A DNA stretch of 63,218 bases, the filler included, from Octopus bimaculoides (Eukaryota), in NCBI RefSeq assembly GCF_001194135.2. It is 4 parts of 4 records of this genome, joined end to end, with 100 filler letters (N's around TTAATTAATTAA, not from the genome) between each part and the next. Parts side by side here need not be neighbours in the genome. Positions count along the whole stretch, not along the records: positions 1 to 26,125 come from NC_069009.1; 3 more parts are not named here. One strand, given 5' to 3'. A program made the translations under genes and the position numbers. How positions within the stretch are numbered: position 1 is the first letter of the stretch; each line of letters starts with the position of its first letter. Below, piece by piece: positions 781 to 25,360 of the stretch. Below the pieces are notes generated by a model. That model saw nothing but the letters and a program-made list of their open reading frames with translations. It was not told the DNA's origin and made no database searches.

Positions 781-1427
781 GATACACAGATAAGGAAATA
801 ATTTTATTCTCAAACACAGGATAATGCTAATAATATAGCATGAACAGGATAATCTAGCCATATTTTGCTGAAAAATCTGTCAGCAGCCAGCTGCAAGACT
901 CAAACTCATATCCCTGTGATTACACGTCAAGTGCCTTACCATTAAGCTAAGCTGACCCAACAAATTCCTCTGCAAATGTAGGATATATAAATCTAGCTTT
1001 ATAAGACACTATTGGAAAGCACTTGACACGTAAACAGGGATGTGAGTTCAAGTCTCATGGCTGGCCGCTGACAGATTTTTCTGCAAAATATAGATAGTTT
1101 ATCTTGTTTATTCTATATTATTAGCATTATTCTGTGTTTAAGAATAAAATTATTTCCTTATCTGTGTATCTTTCAATACACTTCTAAAGCAAACTTTGTT
1201 TACTTTCAATGTAAGTTGAATTTAACGTATGATAGCATCTTTTAAATCTAGATTTATTTATCCTACATTTGAAGAGGAATTTGTCGGGTCAGTTTAGCTT
1301 AATGGTAAAGCATTTGATGTGTAATCACAGGGATGTGAGTTCAAGTCTCATGGCTGGCCACCAACAGACTTTTCTGCAAAATATGGATAGTTTATCCTGT
1401 TTATGCTATATTATTAGCATTATCCTG
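781..1427. repeat. Triplicated, inverted unit containing a tRNA-like sequence
   Basis: 781-934 is the reverse complement of 1019-1170, and 817-996 is the reverse complement of 1248-1427. Confidence 0.9.
1287..1360 (+). pseudogene. tRNA-like cloverleaf (Thr(UGU)-like); tRNA pseudogene or SINE head
   Basis: Acceptor GTCAGTT/GGCTGGC, D-stem GCTT/AAGC, T-arm GTGAG-TTCAAGT-CTCAT, A- and B-box-like motifs, and a T4 run ~10 nt downstream. The anticodon stem is only 3/5 paired and position 33 is G. A second copy lies on the minus strand at ~885-957. Confidence 0.6.
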
Positions 1428-2451: not shown

Positions 2452-2561
2452 GTTCTCCAGAATTTCGAAGAAGAATCAAATTTGGCAGCAAATCATTTTG
2501 TCCGCCATTTGAAGGACCTTCCAGTTGACAAGTCCACCTATCAACACATACCTGTCCCCTG
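2452..2561 (+). CDS. Probable upstream coding exon of the TIFA-like gene (VLQNFEEESNLAANHFVRHLKDLPVDKSTYQHIPVP)
   Basis: Long poly-T tract + TAG acceptor ending at 2451, open frame from 2452, donor TG|GTATGT at 2561/2562. A 76-nt intron to the acceptor CTCTCTGAAG|T (2637/2638) joins it in frame to ATG 2639, which otherwise has an in-frame stop just upstream (2633-2635). Confidence 0.5.
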
Positions 2562-2637
2562 GTATGTGTGTGTAGTTGTGCTTTTTTGGTAGACTCAATT
2601 AACAGAGAACAGCCAGGGGTAGGACATCTCTCTGAAG

Positions 2638-4295
2638 TATGGTGAATGTAATACCCTGTATCGAAGCACATCAAGAAAACCAGGATGAAGTTGTGATTAG
2701 TGTTCAGGGTAGAGTGGGCATTAGACTTCATGGTACAGTGATCAGTGAGGAGGTAGACATAGGGGACAGACAGATCGTGAACAACAGCAACGGAGTCAAC
2801 TATGGTGAAGGGTCAGATATTTGGAACCAAAGCGTAGAGTTAGATTCCAGGGTGCGGAATGTTGTAAATGATGAAGAGGAAATGACAGAAAGTGTCAGGA
2901 TGGATGCTGGGGTGGAGTATCTCACTGAAGAAAGGGGTAACCAGGTAGATGTTGAGGGCATGATGAGGGAAAGAGATCGGGTGGATGCTGAGGGTGAGAC
3001 AAAAGAGAGAGACCGGGTTGATGCTGAGGGTGTGACGAAGGAGAGAGATCGGGTGGATGCTGAGGGTGTAACAAAGGAGAGGGATCGAGTGGATGCTGAG
3101 GGTGTGACGAAGGAGAGAGATCAGGTGGATGCTGAGGGTGTGACGAAGGAGAGAGATCGGGTGGATGCTGAAGGTGTGACGAAGGAGAGAGATCGGGTGG
3201 ATGCTGAGGGTGTGATGAAGGAGANNNNNNNNNNNNNNNNNNNNNNNNNNNNNNNNNNNNNNNNNNNNNNNNNNNNNNNNNNNNNNNNNNNNNNNNNNNN
3301 NNNNNNNNNNNNNNNNNNNNNNNNNNNNNNNNNNNNNNNNNNNNNNNNNNNNNNNNNNNNNNNNNNNNNNNNNNNNNNNNNNNNNNNNNNNNNNNNNNNN
3401 NNNNNNNNNNNNNNNNNNNNNNAGAGAGAGACCGGGTTGATGCTGAGGGTGTGACGAAGGAGAGAGATCGGGTGGATGCTGAGGGTGTAACAAAGGAGAG
3501 GGATCGAGTGGATGCTGAGGGTGTGACGAAGGAGAGAGATCAGGTGGATGCTGAGGGTGTGACGAAGGAGAGAGATCGGGTGGATGCTGAAGGTGTGACG
3601 AAGGAGAGAGATCGGGTGGATGCTGAGGGTGTGATGAAGGAGAGAGATCGGGTGGATAGCGAAGTAGTAACCAAAGAGAGAAGCTCTGGGGACACAAATG
3701 GTGTGAGTGCCAAAGTATTAACTGAACAAAACAGCAAACTGGAACAAAAAGCCTCAAACTACAGCAACAACAGTTGCAGCTGTAATCAACTCCAACACTA
3801 TCAGAGTATGGATGAGACGGGGTTATCAAACAATAGAAGACATTTATCTAGTGTGACCCCACACACTCCGACTCATCTAACACTCTTCTACAAGCCATCA
3901 ATGCTTTCACCCCAGGTGATGAAGTACTTTCCGAAGGAGGTGATTGTCCGTGAGAAAGGCAAACATGTGTCTTTTGGACGGAACCTCAGTTCTGACGTCC
4001 AGCTCAATGACGATTGTATGTCAAGGAACTATGCTCTTCTGTGGTTGCCCGTCAACGACTGTGGGACATTTAAACTGCGCAACATCAGCTCATCAAAGGA
4101 AGTGGTTGTAGATGATGTCCTCCTCTATCCTAACTGCAACAGTGAGATGATCGTCAACAACAACAGTAAAATTGTGCTTGATAACATTGAACTAACAGCA
4201 GTGGTGAGAGCAGGAAGCCCTTCAGCAACACATTATGAAGTGAAAATTGAACCTACAATCTCACGAAGTACTTCGTTACAGCAAGAACCAACTTG
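2638..4295 (+). CDS. TIFA: Main coding exon of a TIFA-like (TRAF-interacting, FHA-domain) protein with an acidic repeat-containing N-terminal extension
   Basis: ORFs 2639-3454 and 3451-4299 are one reading frame split by the N-gap at 3224-3422. The C-terminal part (TPHTPTHLTLFYKP...VSFGRN...DDCMSRNYALL...FKLRNISSSKEVVVDD...AGSPSATHYEVKIE) aligns by eye to human TIFA as recalled (TEETVTCLQMTVYHP...VKFGRN...DKQVSRVQFSL...FEIKNMSKKTNLIVDS...DGESLEFFETQF). The exon ends at a consensus donor TG|GTGAGT (4295/4296). Confidence 0.85.
2967..3678 (+). repeat. Coding minisatellite, 36-bp unit encoding ERDRVDAEGVTK
   Basis: Unit GAGAGAGATCGGGTGGATGCTGAGGGTGTGACGAAG. Seven units before and seven after the N-gap, with six of them identical on both sides. 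Confidence 0.95.
3856..4251 (+). other. TIFA-type Thr motif plus FHA domain
   Basis: FHA signature G-R (3976-3981), S-R (4021-4026) and R-N (4078-4083), equivalent to TIFA G50/R51, S66/R67 and K88/N89. Preceded by T-P-H-T-P-T-H-L, matching TIFA T9-E-E-T12-V-T14-C-L16 with one gap. Confidence 0.8.
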
Positions 4296-4407
4296 GTGAG
4301 TTGTTTTAATGGCTTTTGATGATTTTTAAATGCTTTGAAAATGAAAAAAAAAAAAGAATTCAAAACTATTTTTTTAAAAACTGTAAATTGAAAAGAGGAA
4401 CTAATTA

Positions 4408-4568
4408 GGTGCAGGAGTGGCTGTGTGCTAAGAAGCTTTCTTCTCAACCACATGGTTCCAGGTTCAGTCTCACTGTGTGGCACCTTGAGCAAGTGTCTTC
4501 TGCTATAGCCACAGGCCAACCAAAGCCTTGTGAGTGGATTCAGTAGACGGAAACTGAAAGAAGCCCGT

Positions 4569-4570
<2 letters not shown>
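4408..4570 (+). mobile_element. SINE family A (tRNA-derived, CORE-like), 5' half
   Basis: GCAGGAGTGGCTGTG...GGTTCAGTC...GGCACCTTGAGCAAGTG...GACGGAAACTGAAAGAAGCCCG; many copies in the window. Confidence 0.8.
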
Positions 4571-4621
<51 letters not shown>

Positions 4622-6735
4622 TATACATATACATATGATGGACTCTCCTGTTGTTAGATAACGTATGAAGGTTTGACAATTTCTTACCGAACAACCACAC
4701 AGATGATTTGTTTATAGTGATCAAATGTTTGTGTACATATAAGCTCACTCCCTCCATCAAATTGACATTACCTGTACAGGTGCAACTAGGTTACACATGT
4801 CAGATGTTGAAATGATCGCAGAGTAACGTGAAATGAAATGCTTTGTGCAAGAACACAACACAACGTCCAGCTGGGTGGACTGGAGCACTGTGAAATAAAG
4901 TGTCTTGCTCAGGGATACAACGCGCCACTGGGAATTGAACTCGTGACCTATGATTGCAAGCCAAATACCCTAACCACTAAACCTTCACTATACACATACA
5001 TACAGTCAAAACTATTGAAAAGGTTGCAAGACGCAACAAAAATTTCTCTCCCCAGACACAACCAAATATGCTTCAATACATCCACTCACATGAAGAATCT
5101 TGCAAACCAAATCCAAAAATGAAACAAATATATATGTGCCCCTGGACTGGCTCTTGTGCGGGTGGCACATGAGATGCACCATTTTGAGCGTGGCCGTTGC
5201 CAGTACCGCCTGACTGGCTCCCGTAGGATTTTCGAGTGAGATCGTTGCCAGTGCCCCTGGACTGGCTTGTGCGGGTGGCACATGAGATGCACCATTTTGA
5301 GCGTGGCCGTTGCCAGTACCGCCTGACTGGCTCCCGTANNNNNNNNNNNNNNNNNNNNNNNNNNNNNNNNNNNNNNNNNNNNNNNNNNNNNNNNNNNNNN
5401 NNNNNNNNNNNNNNNNNNNNNNNNNNNNNNNNNNNNNNNNNNNNNNNNNNNNNNNNNNNNNNNNNNNNNNNNNNNNNNNNNNNNNNNNNNNNNNNNNNNN
5501 NNNNNNNNNNNNNNNNNNNNNNNNNNNNNNNNNNNNNNNNNNNNNNNNNNNNNNNNNNNNNNNNNNNNNNNNNNNNNNNNNNNNNNNNNNNNNNNNNNNN
5601 NNNNNNNNNNNNNNNNNNNNNNNNNNNNNNNNNNNNNNNNNNNNNNNNNNNNNNNNNNNNNNNNNNNNNNNNNNNNNNNNNNNNNNNNNNNNNNNNNNNN
5701 NNNNNNNNNNNNNNNNNNNNNNNNNNNNNNNNNNNNNNNNNNNNNNNNNNNNNNNNNNNNNNNNNNNNNNNNNNNNNNNNNNNNNNNNNNNNNNNNNNNN
5801 NNNNNNNNNNNNNNNNNNNNNNNNNNNNNNNNNNNNNNNNNNNNNNNNNNNNNNNNNNNNNNNNNNNNNNNNNNNNNNNNNNNNNNNNNNNNNNNNNNNN
5901 NNNNNNNNNNNNNNNNNNNNNNNNNNNNNNNNNNNNNNNNNNNNNNNNNNNNNNNNNNNNNNNNNNNNNNNNNNNNNNNNNNNNNNNNNNNNNNNNNNNN
6001 NNNNNNNNNNNNNNNNNNNNNNNNNNNNNNNNNNNNNNNNNNNNNNNNNNNNNNNNNNNNNNNNNNNNNNNNNNNNNNNNNNNNNNNNNNNNNNNNNNNN
6101 NNNNNNNNNNNNNNNNNNNNNNNNNNNNNNNNNNNNNNNNNNNNNNNNNNNNNNNNNNNNNNNNNNNNNNNNNNNNNNNNNNNNNNNNNNNNNNNNNNNN
6201 NNNNNNNNNNNNNNNNNNNNNNNNNNNNNNNNNNNNNNNNNNNNNNNNNTATATATATATATATATATATGAATGATGTATATCCATACATATGTATATG
6301 TGTGTGTGTCTGCATATGTGTATGTATATATATGTGTGCATGCATGTGTGTCCATGTATAAATTTACTACAATGAATAAAAATATGTAATGACCATTATT
6401 TATATTTTGTCTTGTATATCACCCTGCGCTAAAAAAAAAAAAACTCAGAATAATTGGGAACACAACCATGGGTTTACAATATAGAATGGTGATGAACTAT
6501 ATAACCTTGGACCCTGCCACAAGAATACTTGGAGTTCTTTGCTAAGCTAAATAATATTGCTAGCCTGGTGTACTAACAGGAAGCTTGTAAAGTACTTTGT
6601 CTGGATTGATAATCCCTCACTAACAATGTGTGTGTGTGTGTGTGGGGGGGTGCATGTGTGTATGTATATATGTGTGTGCATGTGTGTGTGTGTGTGTGTG
6701 TATATATACACATATATATATTATACATACATATT

Positions 6736-6951
6736 GTAGAGGTTCATGGCTTAGTGATTAGGGTGTTGGACTCATGATCATAAGATTGTGGTTTCAATTC
6801 CTGGACCAGGTGACATGTGTTCTTGAGCAAAACCCTTCATTTCACTCATCTGGCAAACATAAGTAATCCTGCAAGGGGCCAGTGTCCCACCCAGGGAAGA
6901 ATATATATATGGTAGAGAGACCAGGAAACCAGCCCTATACACCTTTCAGAG
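6736..6951 (+). mobile_element. SINE family F (tRNA head + CTTGAGCAAxAC core)
   Basis: TGGCTTAGTGATTAGGGTG...GGTTTCAATTCC...TTCTTGAGCAAAAC. Related copies at 4858-4990(-), 7505-7625(-), 51915-52150(+), 53155-53330(+) and 60255-60390(-). Confidence 0.7.
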
Positions 6952-7680
6952 TNNNNNNNNNNNNNNNNNNNNNNNNNNNNNNNNNNNNNNNNNNNNNNNN
7001 NNNNNNNNNNNNNNNNNNNNNNNNNNNNNNNNNNNNNNNNNNNNNNNNNNNNNNNNNNNNNNNNNNNNNNNNNNNNNNNNNNNNNNNNNNNNNNNNNNNN
7101 NNNNNNNNNNNNNNNNNNNNNNNNNNNNNNNNNNNNNNNNNNNNNNNNNNNNNNNNNNNNNNNNNNNNNNNNNNNNNNNNNNNNNNNNNNNNNNNNNNNN
7201 NNNNNNNNNNNNNNNNNNNNNNNNNNNNNNNNNNNNNNNNNNNNNNNNNNNNNNNNNNNNNNNNNNNNNNNNNNNNNNNNNNNNNNNNNNNNNNNNNNNN
7301 NNNNNNNNNNNNNNNNNNNNNNNNNNNNNNNNNNNNNNNNNNNNNNNNNNNNNNNNNNNNNNNNNNNNNNNNNNNNNNNNNNNNNNNNNNNNNATATATG
7401 TCTATATATATGTCTATATATATAGTAAAGTCTATTTGCCAACCCAATGTGGCAGTCCTACATAGGACAATGTTACTACAGTGTATAGAGATGGTTTCCT
7501 GGTCTCTCTAGTATATATATATATTCTTCCCAGGGTGGGATACTGGTCCCTTGCAGGATTACTTAGGTTTGCCAGATGAGTGGACTGGAGCAATGTGAAA
7601 TGAAGGGTTTCCAGCTGGCTACCAACACATGGTCTGTGTCCGTATACTATGAGCAAGGGAGTTTATTGCTCCCTTTGTAG

Positions 7681-7944
7681 CAGGGCTGTGGAGTCTGAGT
7701 TGGAAACAATTAAGAAGTAGCTGGAGTCGGAGTCTGTAAAACTATACTGACTCATAATGTCTTTATTCTTTAATATAATCCAGTTATAACATATAGGCCT
7801 ACTCAAAGTACAAGCATATGCATATGCTTCATGAGATATGTAGATCACAATCACTTAATTACATGAAGAGGAGTCAGAGTCGGAATTGGAGTCAGAGGTG
7901 CCAGAGTTGGAGTCGAAGTTTTTTGTTTTGACTCCACAGCCCTA
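7681..7944. mobile_element. hAT-type MITE
   Basis: 15-bp TIRs CAGGGCTGTGGAGTC / GACTCCACAGCCCTA, 8-bp TSD CTTTGTAG / CTTTCTAG (7/8), and internal GGAGTC sub-repeats. Confidence 0.8.
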
Positions 7945-8704
7945 CTTTCTAGCCTTAGCAATACCTGTAGACCAATAGTTTCTGAGTTATTTCCCTTCCT
8001 CAGCACAGGACAAATCATTGGCTAGAGATGGTAGCCACTTGACCTTGCTCATAGTATATACTTTTAAAGTGACATACAGTCGCTGATCTCGTAAAGAGCA
8101 AAACAACTAGTTTTTAATCTCTGAGCGAGAAATATGTAATAACAGTACTGAACAATAAAGTCTATTTGCCAACACAATGTGATATGTCCTTGCACAGGGG
8201 CCATTCGGACTCCTGTCTTTGCCGTGAACAGGGATTAATCTTCTCTCTTCGCTCCTATGCGCCACATGGGCTCAACTCTCCTCCCCTCTTCATCTAACCC
8301 TCCTCCTNNNNNNNNNNNNNNNNNNNNNNNNNNNNNNNNNNNNNNNNNNNNNNNNNNNNNNNNNNNNNNNNNNNNNNNNNNNNNNNNNNNNNNNNNNNNN
8401 NNNNNNNGACCGATAGAATAAGTACTAGGCTTACAAAGAATAAGTCCTGGGGTCAAAACAAGTAAAAGAGTAAAAGAGTAAATAAGAACTGATAGAAAGG
8501 AAGGGGAGAACCAAAGCTGTAACGTTTGTTTTTCTCAAAGCGTGCCTTCCATAGTTATTTTATCAAGATAAAGAATCTTATAAGCATTGACTTAACAGAT
8601 AGGCTGGAGAGAAATGAGAGTCATTGGACGATAGGAAGAGCCAGCAAGGCCACAGTCTAATCACCAAAACAAGTGAAAAAAATATATATACTGCCTATAT
8701 ATTG

Positions 8705-9647
8705 GTTTCCAATGTTAGCACAAGGCCAGGTAAGTTTGGGGGAGGGGGTAAGTTGATGACATCAACCCCAGTACTCAACTGGTACTTATTTTATTGATCC
8801 CAATTGGATGAAAGGCAAAGTCAATCTTGGCATAATTTGAACTCAGAACATAAAGACGGATGAAATACCACAAAGTATTTTGTCCGGTGTGCTAACGATT
8901 CTGCCAGCTCACCACCTTAATAATATTGATAATCCTTTGTACTAAAGGCATGCGGCCTGAAATTTGTGAGGAGGGGACTAGGACTAGCGAGCTACATTGA
9001 CCTCAGTGTTTCAATGGTACTTTATCAACCCCAAAAGGATGAAAGACAAAGTTGACCTCAGTGGAATTTGAACTCAGAACGTAAAGACGGAAGAAATGCC
9101 ACTCGGCATTTCACCCGGCATGCTAACAATTCTGCCAGCTCACCACCTTAATAATGATAATGATAATAATGATAATGATGATGATAATAATAATANNNNN
9201 NNNNNNNNNNNNNNNNNNNNNNNNNNNNNNNNNNNNNNNNNNNNNNNNNNNNNNNNNNNNNNNNNNNNNNNNNNNNNNNNNNNNNNNNNNNNNNNNNNNN
9301 NNNNNNNNNNNNNNNNNNNNNNNNNNNNNNNNNNNNNNNNNNNNNNNNNNNNNNNNNNNNNNNNNNNNNNNNNNNNNNNNNNNNNNNNNNNNNNNNNNNN
9401 NNNNNNNNNNNNNNNNNNNNNNNNNNNNNNNNTTTTTCTTTCTTTCTGCTTATTAAAAAACTGACAAAATCTGATGATGTCATTCTATCAACGTATGGAC
9501 GCTGATTACTCACGTTCATAGTTTACGTTTGGTTTCTGAAATTTTGAATTTTCAATCACCTTTTGGTTTGAACTTGAGAAAGACAGACGTTCTGTCGAAA
9601 TGTTGTTCAAAGAATAAAACATCTAAAATCGCACTCTTCGTCTTGAC

Positions 9648-9699
<52 letters not shown>

Positions 9700-9917
9700 C
9701 CTTTGTACTCTAGGCACAAGGCCTGAAATTTGGGGGAGGAGATAGTCAATTACATCGACCCTCCCCCCACACCACCACCACCAATATTCAAATGGTACTT
9801 ATTTTATCGACCCTGAAAGGATGAAAGGCGAAGTTGACCTCAACAGAATTTGAACTCAGAGGAAATACTGCTAAGCACTTTGCCCAGTGTGCTAATGATT
9901 CTGCCAGCTTACTGCCT
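8705..9917 (-). mobile_element. Three SINE family C copies (8705-8918, ~8935-9149, 9700-9917)
   Basis: Reverse complements of 10755-10920, interleaved with (TAA)n. Further minus copies at ~36980-37080, 54417-54582, 55165-55335 and ~56330-56430. Confidence 0.8.
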
Positions 9918-10639
9918 TTGTAGTTCATACATATTCCATTGTGCAAAACTACGTTGCAAACAAATAACAATAAACTTGTCAAAGCTGATGACTTTAACCC
10001 GGACTTGGATACACATCCGGAAGTATGAGGCCCATCGTAAATTCTGCAATGCACCAATTACCACCTCAACTTTTGTAAAACAATTTTCCAAAAGTACATT
10101 AGCGATCTATCTCTTACTATTTAAGCAAACATGCTTGTTATATACACTTCCTTCTCAACAGGAACTGAGAGAAACAGTTATTATGAATATAAAGTGTTTC
10201 ACTTAGTGAACAATCAGTGTAACACTTGTCGTAGATTAAAGATTGTTGACATTAAGATAAGCGATACTTGTATTCATTAATTGGAAATATGCTGGAGAAG
10301 GTAGGAGTGGGATATACAAGATCCTTATAGTTTTGAAAGAGTACTACATGACTCGTCATCATGACTCGTCATCATGACTCGTCTGCCACACCTCTCACTC
10401 CAACACAACTGCCCCAATGTCCTGGATACATTCCAGGCCAATGTCTGCAATCAAGTTGTCGATGTAAGTGTGACAACATTTTCCTCTTCTTACATCACCA
10501 TGAAGGTGGCTCCACAAAACTAATTTGGATGCTTCCGATTCAGGGTGGCACACACAGTGACCAGATAGCCACAGTCGTCTTTGCTCGATCTTTTCGCTAA
10601 CTTAGCAGGTCTCCGTAAAGGCATTCATTAGTCATATGT

Positions 10640-11110
10640 TGGTGCCATTTCACATTTAGAGCCATTCATAGCTTAGGTGGTTGGGTGAGCAGTTCAGAAG
10701 CAGACATCAAGATGTGGAAGGCACAAACATGGACAGAAACTGCCTGTCACAAAAGGCGGTGAACTGGTAGAAACGTTAGCACGCCAGGCAAAATACTTAA
10801 TGGTATTTCACCTGCCGTAACGTTCTGAGTTCAAATTCCGCCGAGGTCGACTTTGCTTTTCATCCTTTCGGGGTCGATAAATTAAGTACCAGTTATGCAC
10901 TGGGGTTGATGTAATTGACTTAAATCCATTTGTCTGTCCTTGTTTGTCCCCTCTATGTTTGGCCCCTTGTGGGCAGTGAAGAAATAAGAAACAACCTGTC
11001 ACAAACTAAAGAAGCCTGAAACTCCAAATTGGTCAGACAAATCAAAATCAAACTCTAGCCGTGAGATATGGTCACTGACCAAGGAATTATCAAACAGGCT
11101 GAATTGTTAC
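10640..11110 (+). mobile_element. Degenerate RTE-clade LINE fragment interrupted by a SINE
   Basis: Translates LGGWVSSSEADIKMWKAQTW-ACHKLKK...SKLVRQIKIKL...CEIWSLTKELSNRLNCY, resembling the RTE post-RT region (YLGS..SSExDIK.RK..AW.A..KL; LYGCETWTLTK.L..RLDGCY). Confidence 0.65.
10755..10990 (+). mobile_element. SINE family C (tRNA-derived; central box resembling the MetaSINE-type domain), full length with TSD
   Basis: GGCGGTGAACTGG...GAGTTCAAATTCCGCCGAGGTCGACTTTGCTTTTCATCCTTTCGGGGTCGATAAATTAAGTACC; TSD CCTGTCACAAA at 10743-10753 and 10995-11005. Confidence 0.85.
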
Positions 11111-11464
11111 GACACTAAGTTTCTTCTTTCCTTTATAGTGATAGCGTTGATGACTAATTAGACCAGTTCTTGCATAGAAGAGAGTCAACAACATGGAGGA
11201 CGAGATTGATTTTCTCAAGCCTTTCTCTCCTGTCATTTGATTTCTTCCTTTTCTGGTAATTTTGTTTTTGGTTCCAGTGGTGATGGAACACTGCCACCTG
11301 GTATGGTCTCGGGCTTGTTTCAAATGATTCTATGACTAAAATTACTATGATTATGGATCGAAACCATACATTTAGTCTTTTATCTTACACTTGTTATCTT
11401 ACCAAGCTGGAGCACTGCCTTGAAGTGTTTAGTTTAGTTTTTTCAACCATCATGTGTGTGTGTG

Positions 11465-11497
<33 letters not shown>

Positions 11498-11502
11498 ATA
11501 TA

Positions 11503-11535
<33 letters not shown>

Positions 11536-11911
11536 GTATATATATATATATANNNNNNNNNNNNNNNNNNNNNNNNNNNNNNNNNNNNNNNNNNNNNNNN
11601 NNNNNNNNNNNNNNNNNNNNNNNNNNNNNNNNNNNNNNNNNNNNNNNNNNNNNNNNNNNNNNNNNNNNNNNNNNNNNNNNNNNNNNNNNNNNNNNNNNNN
11701 NNNNNNNNNNNNNNNNNNNNNNNNNNNNNNNNNNNNNNNNNNNNNNNNNNNNNNNNNNNNNNNNNNNNNNNNNNNNNNNNNNNNNNNNNNNNNNNNNNNN
11801 NNNNNNNNNNNNNNNNNNNNNNNNNNNNNNNNNNNNNNNNNNNNNNNNNNNNNNNNNNNNNNNNNNNNNNNNNNNNNNNNNNNNNNNNNNNNNNNNNNNN
11901 NNNNNNNNNNN

Positions 11912-12180
11912 AGACGGAAACTGAAAGAAGCCCGTCGTATATATGTATATATGTGTGTGTGTCTGTGTTTGCGTGTCTGTGTTTGTCCCCCTACCATTGC
12001 TTGACAACCGATGGTGGTGTGTTTGCGTGTCTGTAACTTAGCGGTTCGGCAAAAGAGACCGATAGAATAAGTACTAGGCTTCCAAAGAATAAGTCCTGGG
12101 GTCGATTTGCTCGACTAAATGCAGTGCTCCAGCATGGCCGCAGTCAAATGACTGAAACAAGTAAAAGAGTAAAAAGAGTA
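11912..12180 (+). mobile_element. SINE family A, 3' two-thirds
   Basis: Body with internal (TG)n, GTAACTTAGCGGTTCGGC, and GACTGAAACAAGTAAAAGAG tail. Similar pieces at 8408-8480, 18540-18735, 20515-20740 and 47165-47310. Confidence 0.8.
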
Positions 12181-12559
12181 TATATATATATATATACACA
12201 TGCATATAGATTCAAAATAAGGAACAACATTCTCTTCCCAATTCAACTAACTCATATATATATAAAAGGCATAATCATTCATGATGAATCTCTCACGGAA
12301 AGATGAAAGCACTAGATAAATAATGATCCAGAATCCTGACTACTTTTAGTATATAAAATCTGTACACTACTTCAGACAATCTACAGAGAGAGAGAGAGAG
12401 AGAGAGATCAGTGATAGGATTCTTTAGAATCTAGGTATATCAGCATGTAAGGTGCCAGAAGGTATTAGTTACAGCCTACATAAGTATATCATGTAATGTA
12501 ACAATAATATAGTATATGACCTCACTATTTTACTAAATATTATTATTTTACTCTTTTTA

Positions 12560-12861
12560 ATATAATTATATAATTATATATAATTATATTACCTCTTGTT
12601 AAATGGCACTGTAGTTGCGTGTGAAAATATAATTTGTTGTATATCATGGATGCATAATGAAATACCATATCCGTACCATCTAAGGAGATGTAAACCGTAA
12701 TGATAGACACCAATTACAATCAATTTGTAGTAGTAGAAATACTTATGATACAGCTAGCACGGTAACAACGCCGGTTAATGAAGTCAGGAGTGCCTTATAT
12801 ACAAATAAAAATGATAAATGCTCATGCAAAGAAAAATCAAAATGTCCTTTGATGAATCTCT
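12560..12861 (+). mobile_element. Penelope-like element fragment (partial duplicate of 13632-13864)
   Basis: ~233-bp near-identical direct repeat ending in the K-C-S-C-(K/R)-E-K-S-K-C-P-L-M-N-L zinc-knuckle-like segment that precedes the PLE GIY-YIG domain. Confidence 0.65.
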
Positions 12862-13003
12862 CTATATTCGTATATGTGTGTATGTTAATTTGACATAGAT
12901 TTTTGCGATTCTTTATGTATGCTTATGAGTGATGTGGATGTATGTGTATATGGAGATATATACACACACATATATGTGTGTATTTGTATATATGTATGTA
13001 TGC

Positions 13004-13480
13004 ATCATCATCGTCATCATCGTCGTTTAATGTCCACTTTCTATGCTGGCATGGGTTGGACAGTTTGACTGAGGACTGGCAAACCAGTAGGCTGCACCAG
13101 GCTCCAATCTGATCTGGTAAGGTTTCTACAGCTGGATGCCCTTCCTAACGCCAATCACTCCAAGAGTGTAGTGGGTGCTTTTACATGCCGCCGGCACAAG
13201 GCCCAATCAGGCGGTACTGGCAACAACCACGCTTAAAGGTGTTCTTTACGTGCCACCTGCACAGGAGCCAGTCTGGCAACGACCATGCTCGAATGTTGTT
13301 TTTCACATGTCACCAGTACATGTGACAGTAAGGTGACACTGGCAACGATCACACTTGAGTGGTGATTTTTATGTGCCACCGGCATGGAAGCCAGTCAGTG
13401 GCCCTGGCAACGATCATGCTCAGATGGTGTTTTTTATGTTCCACTGGCACAAGTGCCAATCAGGCGGTACTGTCATCGGC
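13004..13480 (-). mobile_element. Short retroposon with (GAT)n tail and internal sub-repeats (family R; 3' end resembles RTE-type LINE tails)
   Basis: Plus strand reads (CAT)n-CGTTTAATGTCC...CATGGGTTGGAC...TTTCTACAGCTGGATGCCCTTCCTAACGCC. Other copies at 1960-2170(-), 5130-5337(+), 14995-15185(+), 21349-21452(-), 22140-22530(+), 23165-23370(+) and 62722-63120(-). Confidence 0.75.
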
Positions 13481-13631
13481 TGCATCAGCGATATACGTGT
13501 GTATGTGTGTATATATATATATTGGATACGAAACATAAGAAAATCAGTGCTGGTTGTAATTTCTATAGAAAATCTGTAGGGATCACTGCTAACACAGTAG
13601 AATGCAGTTTTGACTTATAAAAACGTTTAAC

Positions 13632-14400
13632 ATAATTTGTTGTATATCATGGATGCATAATGAAATACCATATCCGTACCATCTAAGGAGATGTAAACCG
13701 TAATGATAGACACCAATTACAATCAATTTGTAGTAGTAGAAATACTTATGATACAGCTAGCACGGTAACAACGCCGTTTAATGAAGTCAGGAGTGCCTTA
13801 TATACAAATAAAAATGATAAATGCTCATGCAGAGAAAAATCAAAATGTCCTTTGATGAATCTCTGTATGAGTACAAATCTTGTATATAAATGTACTGTGC
13901 ACACAAGGAAGAGCCATATGTTTACATTGGGCAGTCAGCTGATTCATTTAAGAATCATTATCGTAACCATGTTGCCAGTTTTAAGTCAATCAATAAGAGA
14001 ACATTTAACATCTTTGGCAGATTTTGTATGGCAACTGAAGGAGGATAGGATGAAGTACAGCATTAATTGGTCCATAGTAAGGTATGCAAAACTATACAAT
14101 ATAATTTCCAGATCCATATCTGTTAACGGTTATTTTCAATACTTTTCTCGCTGGATTGTTTGTTCATTTCTCTTTTTGTCATCCACGATTTTATTTTCAA
14201 TCTTCTATATAAAGATATTTCCTCCATCTGGCTGCTTTCTATAAAACAGGCAGTTACATTGTGGAACAGTTATTTTAACGAGTTGTATTTATTTATTTAT
14301 GAGATACATCTGCACCACTGGATGCTCCTGAACCAGTTGTTGAGTGTCCCACCCATGAGGAATCAATGCTACATGTGTCGAAACAATTGTCGTGATTAAT
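13632..14400 (+). mobile_element. Penelope-like element, GIY-YIG/C-terminal relic
   Basis: CPLMNLCMSTNLVYKCTV...TSLADFVWQLKEDRMKYSINWSIVRYAKLYN matches the PLE C-terminal pattern CPL..CL...VYKATV...T.LS..IW.LK....Y.I.WSI. Confidence 0.75.
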
Positions 14401-14458
14401 AATAAATTCTAGTATATTCCATCTTCCATCTTTCATTTGCCTTATCTGTCTATCTATC

Positions 14459-14491
<33 letters not shown>

Positions 14492-15234
14492 TAAAAATGG
14501 GGAAGGCTAGTTTATGTGATTACCTTAGGTTTCTCGTCCATAAAGGGTTTAGCTTTATGGTGTATTGTCAGATCCCAAAACCTGTTGACCCAAGAGCTCT
14601 TAAAGATATGAAGTAGGAATATATACTGTTCTATATCCAAGAGTGTGCTTCTCCTTTCAGATTTATATTTTTTACAGACGATTGCCAATATCTATATCTC
14701 TTTCTTCCTTTACTCAACCATCTCATTTATACTCTGATCCCCATTCCTTGTGAGTATGCCCAGCATTTTGCCACCATCTCTATCCTGTGGTTTCCCACTC
14801 TCTTTCTCTCTCTTTCTCCTGCACTTCCCTCGGGTTGGGCAACCATGTATTTTCATTGCAGTAGCACACCTGTTTCTGTCTTCATTCCTAATCTTTTGCT
14901 CTCCTGCCGGGTAACCTTGTACTTCCTCTTCAGCAAGACACCTATATCTGTCTCACTATAACCTTTTTCATCATCACCCCCTCCAATGCTTCTCCCCCTC
15001 TTAAAAGTTTTTGTCTTGCATGTATTTGGTGACCCTGTCAGTGCAGGTGCCACTTAAAAGCACCCAGTCCACACTGTAAAGTGGTTGGTGTTTGGAAGGG
15101 CATCCAGCTGTAAAAATCCTGGTGCCATCCCACCTATGCTAGCATGAAACACAGATGTTAAATGATGATGATGATGATGATGTTGATATATATAATATGT
15201 ATATATATATTATATATCTATCTATCTATCTATC

Positions 15235-15274
<40 letters not shown>

Positions 15275-15750
15275 TTGAATAACCACCTTATCAGATGCAC
15301 ATACACAAGGTATGTGTATGTAAATTTGTGCATGTGTCTATATATGCATCTGAGTGAATGTGTGTATAACCTTCTTGGTTCCCTGGTTGTGCTTTCAATT
15401 TAGTTCATATTACCTTTATTACACCCCATCTTAACTCTACTTACAATCTTTCCTTTCCCTTGCTTCTCTTGATGCCACCAAATAATGGCTGACCATCTCG
15501 TCCCATTGACTGTTAGTCTATAAAACCCTCTGATATCCTCAGAGGTTCTCAACCATTTTTTTTATCTCTGGACTCTTTTGATTACTATAGTATTTTATTC
15601 TGGTGGACTCCCATAGCCATTCTATGTTTAAAACAGTTTTATAGAAACAGCTTTCAAAATTCCTATTTTGTTATTAACACATTAACTTGTGTAGGTTGAA
15701 CTATGTTAGAGAGAGAAACCTAGCTGTTTCTTGCAATATATACCAATACA

Positions 15751-16135
15751 GTGGAGGTACAATGGCCCAGTGGTTAGGGCAGCGGACTCGCAGTCATAGG
15801 ATCGCGGTTTTGATTTCCAGACCGGGTGTTGTGAGTGTTTATTGAGCGAAAACACCTAAAGCTCCACGAGGCTCCGGCAGGGGATGGTGGCGGACCCTGC
15901 TGTACTCTTCCACCACAACTTTCTCTCACTCTTTCTTCCTGTTTCTGTTGTGCCTGTAATTCAAAGGGCCAGCCTTGTCACACTGTGTCACGCTGAATAT
16001 CTCCGAGAACTACGTTAAGGGTACATGTGTCTGTGGAGTGCTCAGCCACTTGCACGTTAATTTCACGAGCAGGCTGTTCCGTTGATCAGATCAACTGGAA
16101 CCCTCGCCGTCGTAAGCGAAGGAGTGCCAACAACA
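15751..16135 (+). mobile_element. SINE family B (tRNA-derived), full length with TSD
   Basis: A-box TGGCCCAGTGG, B-box-like GGTTTTGATTTCC, (CAA)n tail, 11-bp TSD ATACCAATACA at 15740-15750 and 16136-16146. Confidence 0.85.
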
Positions 16136-16734
16136 ATACCAATACATCCAAAGCAAAATCTTTTCAGGAGCCCTTAAAATATTGTTGTGGATCCCCAATT
16201 TACAATTTTGTTGCATGGACTGCACCCCCCCCCCAACCTTATATGAACTCTCAGGGGCCATTGGACTCTAGTTGAGAACCTCTGCTGTAAGTGAATGAGA
16301 ATTTTTTCTTTTTCTCTTTTTCACCTTTTTTCTTTTTCTTTTCTTCCTGTATTTCAATCCCTTAAACAAATTCATTTATACACTTTCAAATATATACATT
16401 ATACACTTATATATAATACACAAATATATACATTTATACACTTTCAAATTCATTTATACACTTTGAAATAGCATTCACTATTCATTCTCTCAACTGTAAC
16501 CTAGATGGTGGTGGGACTAAACTGGTGTCATGTTCTCTTTATGTCAACTGTTAAATTTTACTTGTAATTCACTTGATGAAGACGTATTTTATTTTTTAAC
16601 ATGATGTAATATTTTTGTTCATCAATAAAGAACATGTCTGAACATGTCTGTTGCGAACCTCAACCTATCTTATCTGTGTTATTACTTATATATACATGTA
16701 TGTGTGTATATATATGTACATACACACACACACA

Positions 16735-16771
<37 letters not shown>

Positions 16772-17140
16772 NNNNNNNNNNNNNNNNNNNNNNNNNNNNN
16801 NNNNNNNNNNNNNNNNNNNNNNNNNNNNNNNNNNNNNNNNNNNNNNNNNNNNNNNNNNNNNNNNNNNNNNNNNNNNNNNNNNNNNNNNNNNNNNNNNNNN
16901 NNNNNNNNNNNNNNNNNNNNNNNNNNNNNNNNNNNNNNNNNNNNNNNNNNNNNNNNNNNNNNNNNNNNNNNNNNNNNNNNNNNNNNNNATTAATGAGAGA
17001 GATGAAAGTTGGAATCTATGAGAATAGTTATTGATCACTACAGAGTCCCACCCTCAAGGGATTGATGCTTGATAGATTGAAACAATTATAATGATCAATA
17101 AAGATTCTTGTATCTTCCATCTTCTGTCTCTCTTATTAAC

Positions 17141-17194
<54 letters not shown>

Positions 17195-17299
17195 TTTGTG
17201 TGTGTGTATAGGCAAGAGAGAGAACGTTTGTATGTGTGTGTTTATTTATACAACTTATACATATGTGTATATTTATGTGTATTTATATGCTTCTTGCAG

Positions 17300-17468
17300 G
17301 ATGTCCAGTAGTCGTAATGTCGGCAGCACAGCTCACCAGACTGAACACATTGTCTCCTCCACGTACCGAAGAAGCTTGTATGCCCATTCCAGATATCACA
17401 GTACCGGACCAGTCGAACATGGCCTCTCCAAAGAAGTCTCCAGAAATCTCCTCCCGGAGGAAAACTGA
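17300..17468 (+). CDS. Probable last coding exon of the TIFA-like gene (W-MSSSRNVG...SRNLLPEEN*)
   Basis: Acceptor TTCTTGCAG|G at 17299/17300. Phase 2 matches the donor at 4295 (TG+G = Trp). The sequence is non-repetitive and relatively GC-rich amid microsatellites. Stop at 17466-17468, AATAAA at 17558-17563. Intervening exons hidden in N-gaps cannot be excluded. Confidence 0.55.
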
Positions 17469-17557
17469 ATATTTATCGGGGGAAAAATCTAAACCTCTGC
17501 TTATTCACATACTGGAAGGGACTCTAAGATGCATACAGACATCTTTGGTATTCACAA

Positions 17558-17563
17558 AATAAA
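17558..17563 (+). promoter_or_regulatory. Candidate polyadenylation signal
   Basis: AATAAA ~90 nt after the predicted stop, followed by a U-rich tract. Confidence 0.4.
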
Positions 17564-21795: not shown

Positions 21796-22620
21796 TCATA
21801 CCACTGACTTATGTTTTAATGATACATTAAAATTAATCCGGGAGGCACAATAATGTAAAATAATGTATCAATATCATCAGGGAGGAGATTATAAATAACA
21901 GTGTTCATTAATAAGCCATTTTTATAGATGTAAGAAATTATAATATATATTATATGACAAACAAAAGGTAGATAGAGAACGCTAGTAATTCTAAAATACT
22001 GTTAAGAAATTTGACGTCGCTAGGAGTTTTCCCCTTTCTTGAATAGCCCTTTAATTGTTTTACTTATTCCACTCAACTTAAATACGAGCTTCAAGTATAA
22101 ATTAGCTTCAATACTACCTTAAATGTTAAGAGTATTAAATTTCTGACACGTAAAATACACCATTTCGAGCGTGGACGTTGATCGTTACCAATGTCGCCTC
22201 CCTGGCACTTGTGCCAGTGGCACGTGAAAAGACATTCGAGCGAGATCGTTGCCAGTGCCGATGGACTGGCTCCTGTGCAGGTGGCACGTAAAATATACCA
22301 TTTCGAGCATGGCCGTCGCCAGTACCTCCTGACTGGCTCTCGTGCCGGTGGCATGTAAAACATCCACTACACTGTCGGAGTGGTTGGCATTAGCAAGGGC
22401 ATCCAGCTGTAGAAACTCTGCCAAATCAGATTGGAGCCTGGTGTCGCCTCCTGGTCCACCAGTCCTCAGTCAAATCATCCAACCCATGCTAGCATGGAAA
22501 GCAGAAGTTAAACGATGATGATGATGATGAAAAAATGTAAATTAAATTTAAGTAAAGAAGGGGAGAGAGAAAGAGAAAATAAAAAGAGTAATGGAGGAAT
22601 AAATAAAAAATGAATGACAA
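21791..22620 (-). repeat. Inverted copy of the 3' terminal region (pseudo-LTR) of the adjacent Penelope-like element
   Basis: 21791-22025 is the reverse complement of ~25135-25362, and ~22560-22617 of ~25057-25125. It is split by a SINE. Confidence 0.75.
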
Positions 22621-22719: not shown

Positions 22720-25360
22720 TGTGTGTTTTTTCCGATGTAAACACGTTCTTTATAGGTGTTAACAAGTGTGTGTTTGGAAAAAAGGATAAATAGTTGTTCA
22801 AAGAGGTGCAAAAGATTTGCCTTTATCATAAGAGAACAATCTCAACCAAAACTGTTCAAATCTAAAAGTAATCCTCCTCCGAACCCAAGATTAAAACAGT
22901 TTGAATCTGACCTCAGGTCTATTGTTAAGAATGTTAAATTCCACCATTCCCTCTTAAGGAATTGACATTAGAGATATCTACATAATATTACAAAGGAAAT
23001 TAACAACATGGAACGTCTACTTGTTCAATTAGATAAAACTGGCAACCTGTATCATTTAAACACGGATTATTACCTAAAATTACTCGGGAAGGAAATGCAA
23101 AAAATATACTGGTAAAAATGCTATCAGGAAAGCCAACCTGGAAGCTAAGAAAATTATGGAACGCCTGACTGGCCTTCATGCGGGTGGCACGTAAAAGCAC
23201 CCACTACACTCTCAGAGTGGTTGGCGTTAGGAAGGGCATCCAGCTGTAGAAACTCTGCCAAATCAAATTGGAGCCTGGTGTAGCCATCTGGTTTCACCAG
23301 TCCTCAGTCAAATCGTCCAACCCATGCTAGCATGGAAAGCAGACGTTAAACGACGATGATGATGATGAAATGAAGACTGAACCTTTAAATCCAAAGCAAC
23401 TCCGTTTTATTTCAGAGGACCACAAACCTAACTTCTTCAATAATCCAACTCTCCATCGTATCTGTCCTTCCAGCTCCAATATCGGTTTACTTAGCAAAAA
23501 ATATTCTTGATAAGTACATGCTTTCTTTAATGAACAAACTTAAACTTAACTTATGGTCTAATCCATTCCGGGTAGTAGACTGGTTCAACTCTATTGATAA
23601 TAAACTAAACGCTAAATTTATCCAGTTTGATATTTGTAGTTATTATTCCTCTATTAATCCCATAATCCTTAACAAAGCCCTGTGGTTCATGCATAATAAA
23701 TCCAGCCTCACCCTAGATGAAGTTAATGTTGTTTTAGCAGCTACAAAATATATTATCAAATTTGATAATAAATTTGGGGTTTGGAAAGATAGACCTGATT
23801 GCGTTGATATGATAATAGGAGCTAGCAACTCTGCCCAAGTTTCAGATCTGGTCGGTATTTATAATCTATCTGAAATGGCTGTCCAATTCTCATACATCCT
23901 CCATAGATTACATCGCAACGACAATCTTCTTTACCTCCAAAATATCTCTAATCAAAAATTACAAATTCTTAAAAATAATCTGGTTAAATTCTTCAGTTAT
24001 ATGCACCTAAGTTATTACCTTTGATAATAATAGAACAAAAGTTAATTTCCTCGACCTTACACTCAAATCAAATACAGCTTTGTATTTCCCATACCGTAAA
24101 CCTTCGACTAATCTAAAAGATATCAGTTTTTTTAGCAATAATCCTACTAATATAACTAAAAATCTAGTTAAAAACATTTCGCTTAGACTCTCTAAATTAT
24201 CCGCTAATGTTAATATTTTTAATAATAATATTGACTTTTATAATTTGTCTTTACCAAAGGCAGGATATAAGCAGCAAATTAAGTATTGTAACCTGCTTGA
24301 TCCTAGTTTAACCTCTAATAATCAGGTTGATAGTAGCTGTACTAATAACAATAATAATAATACTCATGGATAATAATCTGATAATTCTTTTTATCGAAAT
24401 ATTCAAAAAGCTAATCTTGGTAAATTTAAAAATAAACAGTCTAAGGGAGGTAACTATACTTATCCACTCTTCTGTAAAAATAAAAAAACTCCAGTTTTTT
24501 TTTTATTAATGAGAAATCTCCCTATAAATTGCATAACTGTAGTAAAACTATTTGGCTTGTTATTCCATATAGCAAACAAATTCCTTACCTGTTACGTGAA
24601 CCCATCAAAAGGAACTTCCCCAAAAATTTGAGGTACCACTCTATTCTCAACGCACATCATATCAGAATTGGTTTTCCCAACACTAATAACTTCCTACAAA
24701 TTATCTCTTCACATAACAACTATATTCTTAACGTTAAAAGAATTTTGATCAATAACAGTAATATTAATAATGATAATCACACCTTAAATAATAATATCAT
24801 TAGTAATATTAATTGTAATTGTGATCCGAATAAAATTTGCGTTCTCAAAATGTTGCTTATGAATGCCAAGTTTCTTCAGGAACTAAAGAATTTTTTATGT
24901 TGATATTTCCTCCATGAAATTAAAAAATGTGTAGCCCATCATCTTTCTACATTTAAATATATTAATAAACATAATACTACAGGTCTTAGTAAACTAATTT
25001 GGCATCTCAAAGACTGTAATAAAACAATTTTCTTTGGACTGGAAAATTTTGTCAAGATCATTCACTTTTTATTTGTTTATTCCTCCATTACTCCTTTTAT
25101 TTTTTCTCTCTCTCTTTCTTCTCTTTTTCTCTCATCCTATGATGTCAAATTTCTTAATGGTATTTTAAAATTACTGGCGTTCCCTATCTACCTTTTATTT
25201 TTTTATATATCATAATTTCTTACATCTATAAAAAAGTCTTATTAATGAACACTTATTTATAATCTCCTCCCTGATGAGATTGATACCTTATTCCACATTA
25301 TTTTTCCTCCTTGATTAATTTTAATGTATCCATTGAAACATATGTCAGGGATATGATTTA
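22720..25360 (+). mobile_element. Near full-length, degenerate Penelope-like retroelement
   Basis: Collinear frameshifted pieces: PRLKQFESDLRSIVKNVKF; LVQLDKTGNLY; EDHKPNFFNNPT; RT motifs FIQFDICSYYSSI and GASNSAQVSDLVGIY..HRNDNL; YFPYRKP..SNNPTNI; IWLVIPYSKQI; CNCDPNKIC; TGLSKLIWHLKD. The 3' region carries a hammerhead motif. A SINE is inserted at 23165-23370. Confidence 0.85.
25268..25351 (+). ncRNA. Hammerhead ribozyme motif (type I, PLE-associated, slightly degenerate)
   Basis: CTGATGA at 25271-25277; 9-bp stem II GATTGATAC/GTATCCATT (1 mismatch); GAAA at 25335-25338; palindromic stem III ACATATGT; GUC cleavage triplet ending 25346; imperfect stem I. Confidence 0.6.

Follow-up and report, generated by a model that had tools for sequence, protein, structure and literature searches.

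Vertebrate TIFA and a TIFA-like octopus gene

TIFA, a vertebrate adaptor of 184 residues, carries a threonine motif before the first strand of its FHA domain and ends in P-T-E-M-D-E, a TRAF6-binding motif (PMC12457700). Together with the kinase ALPK1 it has been described as a vertebrate invention for the sensing of bacterial ADP-heptose (PMC12457700, PMC11573728). Here we analyse a gene of Octopus bimaculoides at positions 2639-17468 of the window, by which we mean the whole 63,218-nucleotide stretch of DNA that was examined, filler included; unless stated otherwise, the gene parts, exon-like segments and open reading frames described lie on its plus strand. The gene codes for a protein of 528 residues that is a member of an unnamed FHA family of molluscs, an annelid and amphioxus. 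By both sequence profile and fold, the closest relative of this family among solved structures is vertebrate TIFA (4YM4, 4ZGI, 6L9U, 8WWY). We put the probability that the locus is an intact two-exon gene for a divergent TIFA-like adaptor at roughly 0.7. Homology to the TIFA family, taken by itself, seems to us very probable, because the family profile, the hhalign comparison and the AlphaFold/Foldseek fold all point to TIFA, while a TIFAsome-like function, for which we argue by analogy, is a possibility to which we would give slightly less than even odds.

TIFAB, the vertebrate TIFA paralogue and a negative regulator, has the same extended FHA fold. TIFAB is not known to have either the Thr9 acceptor or a TRAF6 motif. 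The octopus protein keeps both the threonine motif and a P-V-E core in its tail. Canonical FHA domains (e.g. bacterial DgcB and GarA/OdhI; eukaryotic MDC1, Dun1, kanadaptin and Ki-67) share the 11-strand beta-sandwich core and the G-R and S-R loops, but no threonine motif aligns at their N-terminal side, they lack the extra strands at the C-terminal side, and their canonical His and N-G-T residues are retained. In TIFA and the invertebrate family alike, the canonical His and the S-x-N-G-T signature of a canonical control alignment are replaced by N-[MIL]-S-x-x-[KT], and extra strands (G-[DE]...[FY]-E-[TV]-x-F) follow at the C-terminal side. The family also resembles TIFA in the placement of its threonine motif before strand 1 and in the G-R, S-R and [KR]-N residues of its pocket. 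It has the three-part layout of TIFA, namely a threonine motif, an extended non-canonical FHA domain and, in most members, a P-x-E tail.

An FHA family of molluscs, an annelid and amphioxus

Word-indexed homologue searches started from the octopus FHA segment or from the family alignment returned no matches, not even the protein itself, and an exhaustive search was therefore needed. phmmer with the octopus query against 1.84 billion representative sequences yielded 14 relatives, 32-40% identical, at E <= 1e-9; those named are from the bivalve Potamilus, the gastropods Haliotis, Littorina, Babylonia and Pomacea, and the annelid Owenia. A relative from amphioxus (P0020, Branchiostoma lanceolatum XP_066303835.1) matched more weakly, with E 9.4e-4. 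In the databases these proteins are called "uncharacterized" or "FHA domain-containing", and all of the relatives found are FHA proteins.

The alignment of the family (A1) holds 19 sequences. Directly before the domain it shows T-V-E-T-P-S-R-L-x-L-F-Y, with the first Thr conserved in 90% or more of the sequences; the octopus counterpart, S-S-V-T-P-H-T-P-T-H-L-T-L-F-Y, aligns to it ungapped. The motif is conserved in three phyla and keeps a constant spacing to strand 1, which it precedes. Within the domain, the arginines of G-R and S-R, an Asn and one Lys are invariant, and the Gly of G-R is found in at least 90% of the family.

The motifs on which the preliminary description of this locus had rested (TPHTPTHL, FGRN, MSR and RNIS) are all present on the plus strand in one reading frame. 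T-P-H-T-P-T-H-L, a candidate phospho-acceptor motif directly before the FHA domain, lies at 3856-3879 and contains T327, T330, T332 and L334; it is followed in the same frame by FGRN (3973-3984), MSRN (4018-4029) and LRNIS (4075-4089). Pfam FHA (PF00498) matches the exon 1 stretch with 23.7 bits (E 6.5e-5, curated cut-off 20.7) and the full protein with 22.5 bits against the same cut-off, its core covering residues 364-432 (3967-4173). Pfam, the AlphaFold model and Foldseek together delimit a TIFA-type extended FHA domain at residues 332-459 (3871-4254).

Profile and fold comparison with TIFA

When the A1 profile was compared with all Protein Data Bank sequences, the six best matches were all TIFA (31.5 bits, E 1.1e-6 to 8.2e-6), followed by the bacterial DgcB FHA domain (E 8.6e-5, 25.3 bits) and by TIFAB (E 2.8e-4), whose score is below that of TIFA. 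The best eukaryotic FHA domain other than TIFA and TIFAB was that of Dun1 (E 0.024), and then that of kanadaptin (E 0.039). Chfr, RNF8 and kanadaptin had been named beforehand as families to which the protein might belong instead; kanadaptin is thus a far weaker match than TIFA, and CHFR and RNF8 gave no match to the profile in the Protein Data Bank at E <= 10. The alignment of the A1 profile with TIFA begins with the near-invariant Thr of the family placed on TIFA residue 9. All fifteen of the fifteen tetrapod TIFAs compared are matched by this profile with 25.7-41.4 bits, and when the amphioxus row is removed from the profile the best five of them still score 30.3-35.8 bits.

The relationship is also seen when alignments are compared with each other. 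hhalign of the family with the 15 tetrapod TIFAs (alignment A2) gave 96.9%, E 1.6e-10 and a score of 67.5 over 128 columns, and hhalign of the family with canonical bacterial FHA domains (alignment A3) gave 94.3%, E 1e-7 and a score of 47.8 over 79 columns. TIFA compared with the same bacterial FHA alignment reached only 2.1%, E 0.023 and a score of 19.5 over 66 columns. TIFA is therefore much closer to the invertebrate family than it is to ordinary FHA domains.

The residue equivalences that the preliminary description had drawn up with human TIFA (T9/T12/T14/L16, G50/R51, S66 and K88(R)/N89) were reproduced by hhalign and by ungapped alignment. In the hhalign comparison of A1 and A2, T327, T330 and T332 are equivalent to TIFA T9, T12 and T14, and G367-R368 (3976-3981) to G50-R51 of the phosphothreonine pocket. 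Similarly, S382-R383 (4021-4026) corresponds to S66-R67, and R401-N402 (4078-4083) corresponds to K88-N89, with an invariant Asn and a conservative change of Lys to Arg. The equivalence of L334 to L16 comes from the ungapped alignment of the family to TIFA.

In the reverse direction, a hidden Markov model (HMM) built from tetrapod TIFAs only scored the amphioxus protein with 29.4 bits (HMM positions 9-146), the bivalve protein P0002 with 21.1 bits and P0006 with 18.1 bits, compared with 17.2 bits for the best non-TIFA FHA domain in the Protein Data Bank. We further note that the amphioxus protein contains two tandem TIFA-like modules, each preceded by T-V-D-x-[PS]-T-[HR]-L, with a strict PVEHDD between them at residue 389. 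The first of these modules is the top scorer of the family with the vertebrate TIFA HMM. Identity to TIFA is about 19-21%, a level at which the similarity is detectable by profiles only.

The fold points in the same direction. An AlphaFold2 model of a 161-residue octopus segment, made with A1 as the alignment, has a mean predicted local distance difference test (pLDDT) score of 90.5 and a predicted template modelling score of 0.80, with strands at residues 21-148 of the segment; the 20 residues that carry the threonine motif are less confident (pLDDT 62-79). The comparison of such a model with the TIFA structure, which had been proposed earlier, bore out the expected likeness. In a Foldseek search of the Protein Data Bank the first eight matches are all TIFA or TIFAB (E 6.2e-10 to 2.4e-7; the fifth is TIFAB, 8wwy_B, E 1.5e-8), with target-normalised template modelling (TM) scores of 0.74-0.82 over 136-139 columns, which is essentially the whole of the TIFA chains. 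All other FHA domains are more than 100-fold weaker (E >= 3.2e-5, query-normalised TM <= 0.49), and the matches of canonical FHA domains are shorter, at 79-115 columns. The octopus model shows the extended fold of the TIFA type, of about 140 residues, with extra strands past the FHA core.

A TRAF6-type motif at the C terminus of the family

We defined a strict TRAF6-type motif as P-x-E-x-x-[DEFWY] within the last 45 residues. Fifteen of the 19 proteins have it, against a chance expectation of 0.63 by shuffling of whole sequences and of 1.5 by shuffling of tails only (maximum 6 in 5000); counted by non-redundant lineage, it occurs in 10 of 12. The motif is often the sole one of its type in the protein (e.g. 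RRSPVENAEWDTDDPNINCYM), and in most members the terminal P-x-E-x-x-[D/E] resembles the P-T-E-M-D-E of TIFA. In most family members other than the octopus protein, a disordered linker of about 100-500 residues separates the FHA domain from this tail.

The octopus protein has a relaxed version, P-V-E-H-G-L, at residues 510-515 of 528 (17409-17426). At this place P0022 and P0005 read PQEHAM and P0012 reads PQEHSM, these being the nearest relatives of the octopus protein; gastropods and a bivalve have PVENAE or PVENSD. The octopus and its nearest relatives have a P-x-E-H core in common.

How firmly the octopus protein is tied to TIFA

Several observations weigh against a TIFA-like adaptor. Taken alone, the octopus sequence has no TIFA among its Protein Data Bank matches at E <= 10; only a bacterial GGDEF-FHA protein is matched, at E about 1. 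The tetrapod-only TIFA HMM gives it just 4.6 bits, and a pairwise comparison 9.7 bits. The E value of 1e-6 between the family and TIFA holds for the 177,635 sequences searched and would be about 0.01 against 1.8 billion. A neighbour-joining tree whose only eukaryotic FHA families are this one and TIFA shows TIFA as monophyletic and groups the octopus protein with P0005 and P0022, and does not bear on placement among FHA families. The threonine motif of the octopus protein lies 326 residues from the N terminus rather than at it, internal because of a repeat-rich N-terminal extension of about 325 residues. In the tail, PVEHGL has Leu where the TRAF6 consensus wants an acidic or aromatic residue, and it therefore falls outside the strict consensus that TIFA itself follows. 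Finally, TIFA and ALPK1 are both described as restricted to vertebrates in two papers (PMC12457700, PMC11573728), which makes absence of the canonical upstream kinase probable. The literature that we searched for an invertebrate TIFA or ALPK1 reports none, and in the mollusc papers examined the term TIFA is an entry in the reference list or is absent from the main text.

These difficulties bear most directly on the explanation that competes best with a TIFA-like adaptor. The protein could be a generic phosphothreonine-binding FHA protein with another role (in the nucleus, in the DNA-damage response or in RNA processing), in which case the likeness to TIFA would reflect convergence or a shared loss of canonical residues, and the threonine motif and the tail would be coincidental. 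The lack of significant similarity between the octopus protein alone and TIFA is what such a protein would give, and the profile margin is modest (31.5 bits for TIFA against 25.3 bits for bacterial DgcB FHA), but coincidence sits poorly with a threonine motif that is held at a fixed distance before strand 1 in three phyla and with a terminal TRAF6-type motif that is strongly enriched in the family. Similarly, the family does align to canonical bacterial FHA domains, with E 1e-7, yet the match of TIFA to the family is much stronger than its match to canonical FHA. A third independent point of agreement with TIFA, beside the motif and the tail, is the fold, which extends over about 139 residues and aligns with TIFA chains over their whole length. 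We therefore regard a generic FHA protein as improbable, though as an explanation to be taken seriously.

The earlier proposal that this is a true TIFA-family member and not a generic FHA protein is accordingly upheld by the family profile and by the fold, but not by the octopus sequence alone, which shows no significant similarity to TIFA. The octopus protein is a divergent member of its family, and its link to TIFA is transitive, running through the family.

Structure of the gene

The gene has two coding exons, 2639-4295 and 17300-17468, and the spliced product is identical to RefSeq XP_052834000.1 (528 residues), which was recovered by the exhaustive protein search. Its annotated span of 14,830 nt equals window positions 2639-17468 (GCA_001194135.2, chromosome CM046629.1; the window is base-for-base identical), and the annotation of GCA_001194135.2 calls no further gene within 34.8 kb. 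Exon 1 (2639-4295) contains the start codon, the N-terminal acidic repeats, the Thr-rich motif and the FHA domain and ends in phase 2; an in-frame TGA (2633-2635) lies just before its ATG at 2639. A donor GTGAGT (4296-4301) and an acceptor AG (17298-17299, ...TTGCAG) bound the 13-kb intron (4296-17299), in which six assembly gaps and interspersed repeats are found. The codon at the junction, TG joined to G, encodes Trp and is followed by MSSSRNV.... Exon 2 (17300-17468) encodes a C-terminal tail of 55 residues that matches the C terminus of XP_052834000.1, with the stop TGA at 17466-17468. A likely polyadenylation signal, AATAAA, lies 90 nt past the stop at 17558-17563, which is where the locus had been drawn to end in the preliminary description.

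The spliced open reading frame claimed there is thus real as regards splicing, but its boundaries differ from ours, since its start at 2452 is noncoding in the RefSeq model. A coding start at 2452 is ruled out by the in-frame TGA at 2633-2635, the RefSeq protein beginning at 2639, and a last exon in the frame that closes at 17560-17562 is likewise ruled out, as the RefSeq protein follows a frame with its stop at 17466-17468. The segment at 2452-2562 is nevertheless exon-like, with good splice signals: its 37 open codons (VLQNFEEESNLAANHFVRHLKDLPVDKSTYQHIPVPW) are preceded by a very long polypyrimidine tract and AG and followed by GTATGT. It is absent from the RefSeq coding sequence and has no Pfam match, and it may be a 5' untranslated or an alternative exon.

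If the intron is retained, the frame at 4296-4299 reads Trp and then TGA (...QQEPTW*). The product would keep the threonine motif and the FHA domain and lose the P-V-E tail, and may represent a tail-less isoform reminiscent of TIFAB. An older database entry of 472 residues (P0001) stops at the exon 1 boundary.

The N-terminal repeat and the assembly gap

Most of the N-terminal extension that distinguishes the octopus protein from TIFA is an acidic 12-residue repeat (RDRVDAEGVTKE), encoded by a 36-nt tandem array at 2944-3706 (period 36 by Tandem Repeats Finder, with 87-92% matches to either side of a gap). Each unit contains one Thr, in a T-K-E context. The relatives have one to several units resembling VD-x-x-x-x-T-V-E-K upstream of the FHA domain, and a post hoc count over the family puts the density of T-[VK]-[ED] triplets on the N-terminal side of the FHA domain at about 27 times that on its C-terminal side. 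The octopus repeat (...VDAEGVTKE...) looks like an amplified version of these acceptor-like upstream units.

The array is interrupted by an assembly gap of 198 N at 3225-3422, flanked by an exact duplicate of 221 nt (3004-3224 on the left, 3423-3643 on the right). This duplication probably represents overlapping contig ends, or else a higher-order repeat unit of 221 nt or more in the array. At least 7 repeat units are present, and the 12 units of the RefSeq model come from an in-frame join across the gap and are not measured sequence. We did not accept these 12 as the true length of the array: because the model skips the gap in frame and merely joins six repeats on the left to six on the right, it does not give the true repeat number.

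The gap also bears on whether the locus could be decaying or mis-assembled, that is, a pseudogene or an artefact of the repeat and gap, which we consider very unlikely. It does lie inside the coding sequence and leaves the repeat count unfixed, and when its 198 N are taken literally the two sides are out of frame. The same 36-nt repeat is found on both flanks, however, and every join consistent with its period is in frame: collapsing the flank overlap (offset 419) gives one continuous frame and a 413-residue exon 1 product, and a single frame also results from a gap of any length in step with the 36-nt period (31 mod 36). Continuity of the reading frame over the gap is not in doubt. Moreover, neither the 1,657-nt exon 1 nor exon 2 has an internal stop, the gene shows canonical splice signals and every pocket residue is intact. 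The remaining gaps (5339-6249, 6953-7393, 8308-8407, 9196-9432, 11553-11911 and 16772-16988) are all intronic and do not affect the reading frame.

The RefSeq label of the protein, "splicing regulatory glutamine/lysine-rich protein 1" (SREK1), would make it an RNA-binding splicing factor, a reading for which the database name is the only ground, although the charged repeat, rich in Arg, Asp, Glu and Lys, may be like the low-complexity stretches of such factors, and which we find hardly credible given that all relatives found are FHA proteins. We rejected the name as unfounded because the Pfam scan of the whole 528-residue protein finds FHA alone, with no RNA-recognition motif (RRM) or other RNA-binding domain.

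Other elements in the window

Rfam and tRNA scans found nothing connected with the octopus gene. Two tRNA-like sequences at 1287-1363 (plus strand) and 885-956 (minus strand) are called tRNA-Thr TGT by ARAGORN and score 41.6 and 29.2 bits with the Rfam tRNA model. Both fall inside an inverted repeat (817-1012 and 1232-1427, 86% complementary), and they look like copies of a tRNA-derived short interspersed nuclear element rather than tRNA genes.

Several copies of short interspersed repeats, in either orientation, are found within the intron and also downstream of the gene (5153-5225, 5266-5338 and 22272-22344); the first two are 100% identical, and this pair ends at a gap. A further interspersed set relates 13008-13213 to 22357-22530 and 23162-23294. 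Within the intron, a 240-nt direct repeat (12626-12865 and 13629-13868) is 98% identical, with copies 1003 nt apart, and could be LTR-like or reflect a local or assembly duplication. At 23518-24903 we observe a run of AT-rich open reading frames of 97-168 residues (e.g. ...FIQFDICSYYSSINPIILNKAL...) with no Pfam match at E <= 1, which may be a decayed mobile-element coding region.

A proposed mechanism and its implications

If the protein works in the manner of TIFA, a kinase would phosphorylate T327, and possibly T330 or T332, and the phosphothreonine of one molecule would dock in the FHA pocket (R368, S382, R401 and N402) of another. Such docking would build head-to-tail oligomers, as in TIFAsomes, and the clustered C-terminal tails could then recruit a TRAF-family E3 ligase and feed NF-kB/MAPK-type signalling. 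The acceptor context is not that of TIFA, where the threonine is followed as T-E-E, nor that of other family members, where T-V-E is found; the octopus threonines are followed by Pro, which suggests a proline-directed kinase rather than a kinase of the ALPK1 type. Because of this T-P context, and because ALPK1 is reported as absent from invertebrates (PMC12457700), the kinase is probably different from ALPK1.

A wider scenario, which we offer tentatively and consider rather doubtful, is that signalling of the TIFA type, with polymerisation through phosphothreonine and FHA and clustering of TRAF6 tails, is ancestral to bilaterians and predates ALPK1. Molluscs, annelids and amphioxus would then keep a long-linker version that uses a different kinase, and the octopus RDRVDAEGVTKE array (at least 7-12 units) would act as a multivalent phosphothreonine scaffold that could seed much larger assemblies than vertebrate TIFA does.

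We rate the family as a distant and architecturally extended TIFA-like family, and the octopus gene as an unusually elaborated member of it. For the octopus protein, this replaces a misleading RefSeq name. If the relationship holds, an invertebrate family with the design of threonine motif, FHA domain and TRAF6 motif would date the adaptor back to early bilaterians and would uncouple its origin from that of ALPK1. It also raises the testable question of which kinase and which stimulus act in molluscs, annelids and amphioxus, and it would give immunologists a new candidate node, placed upstream of TRAF6, to study in cephalopods, oysters and snails.

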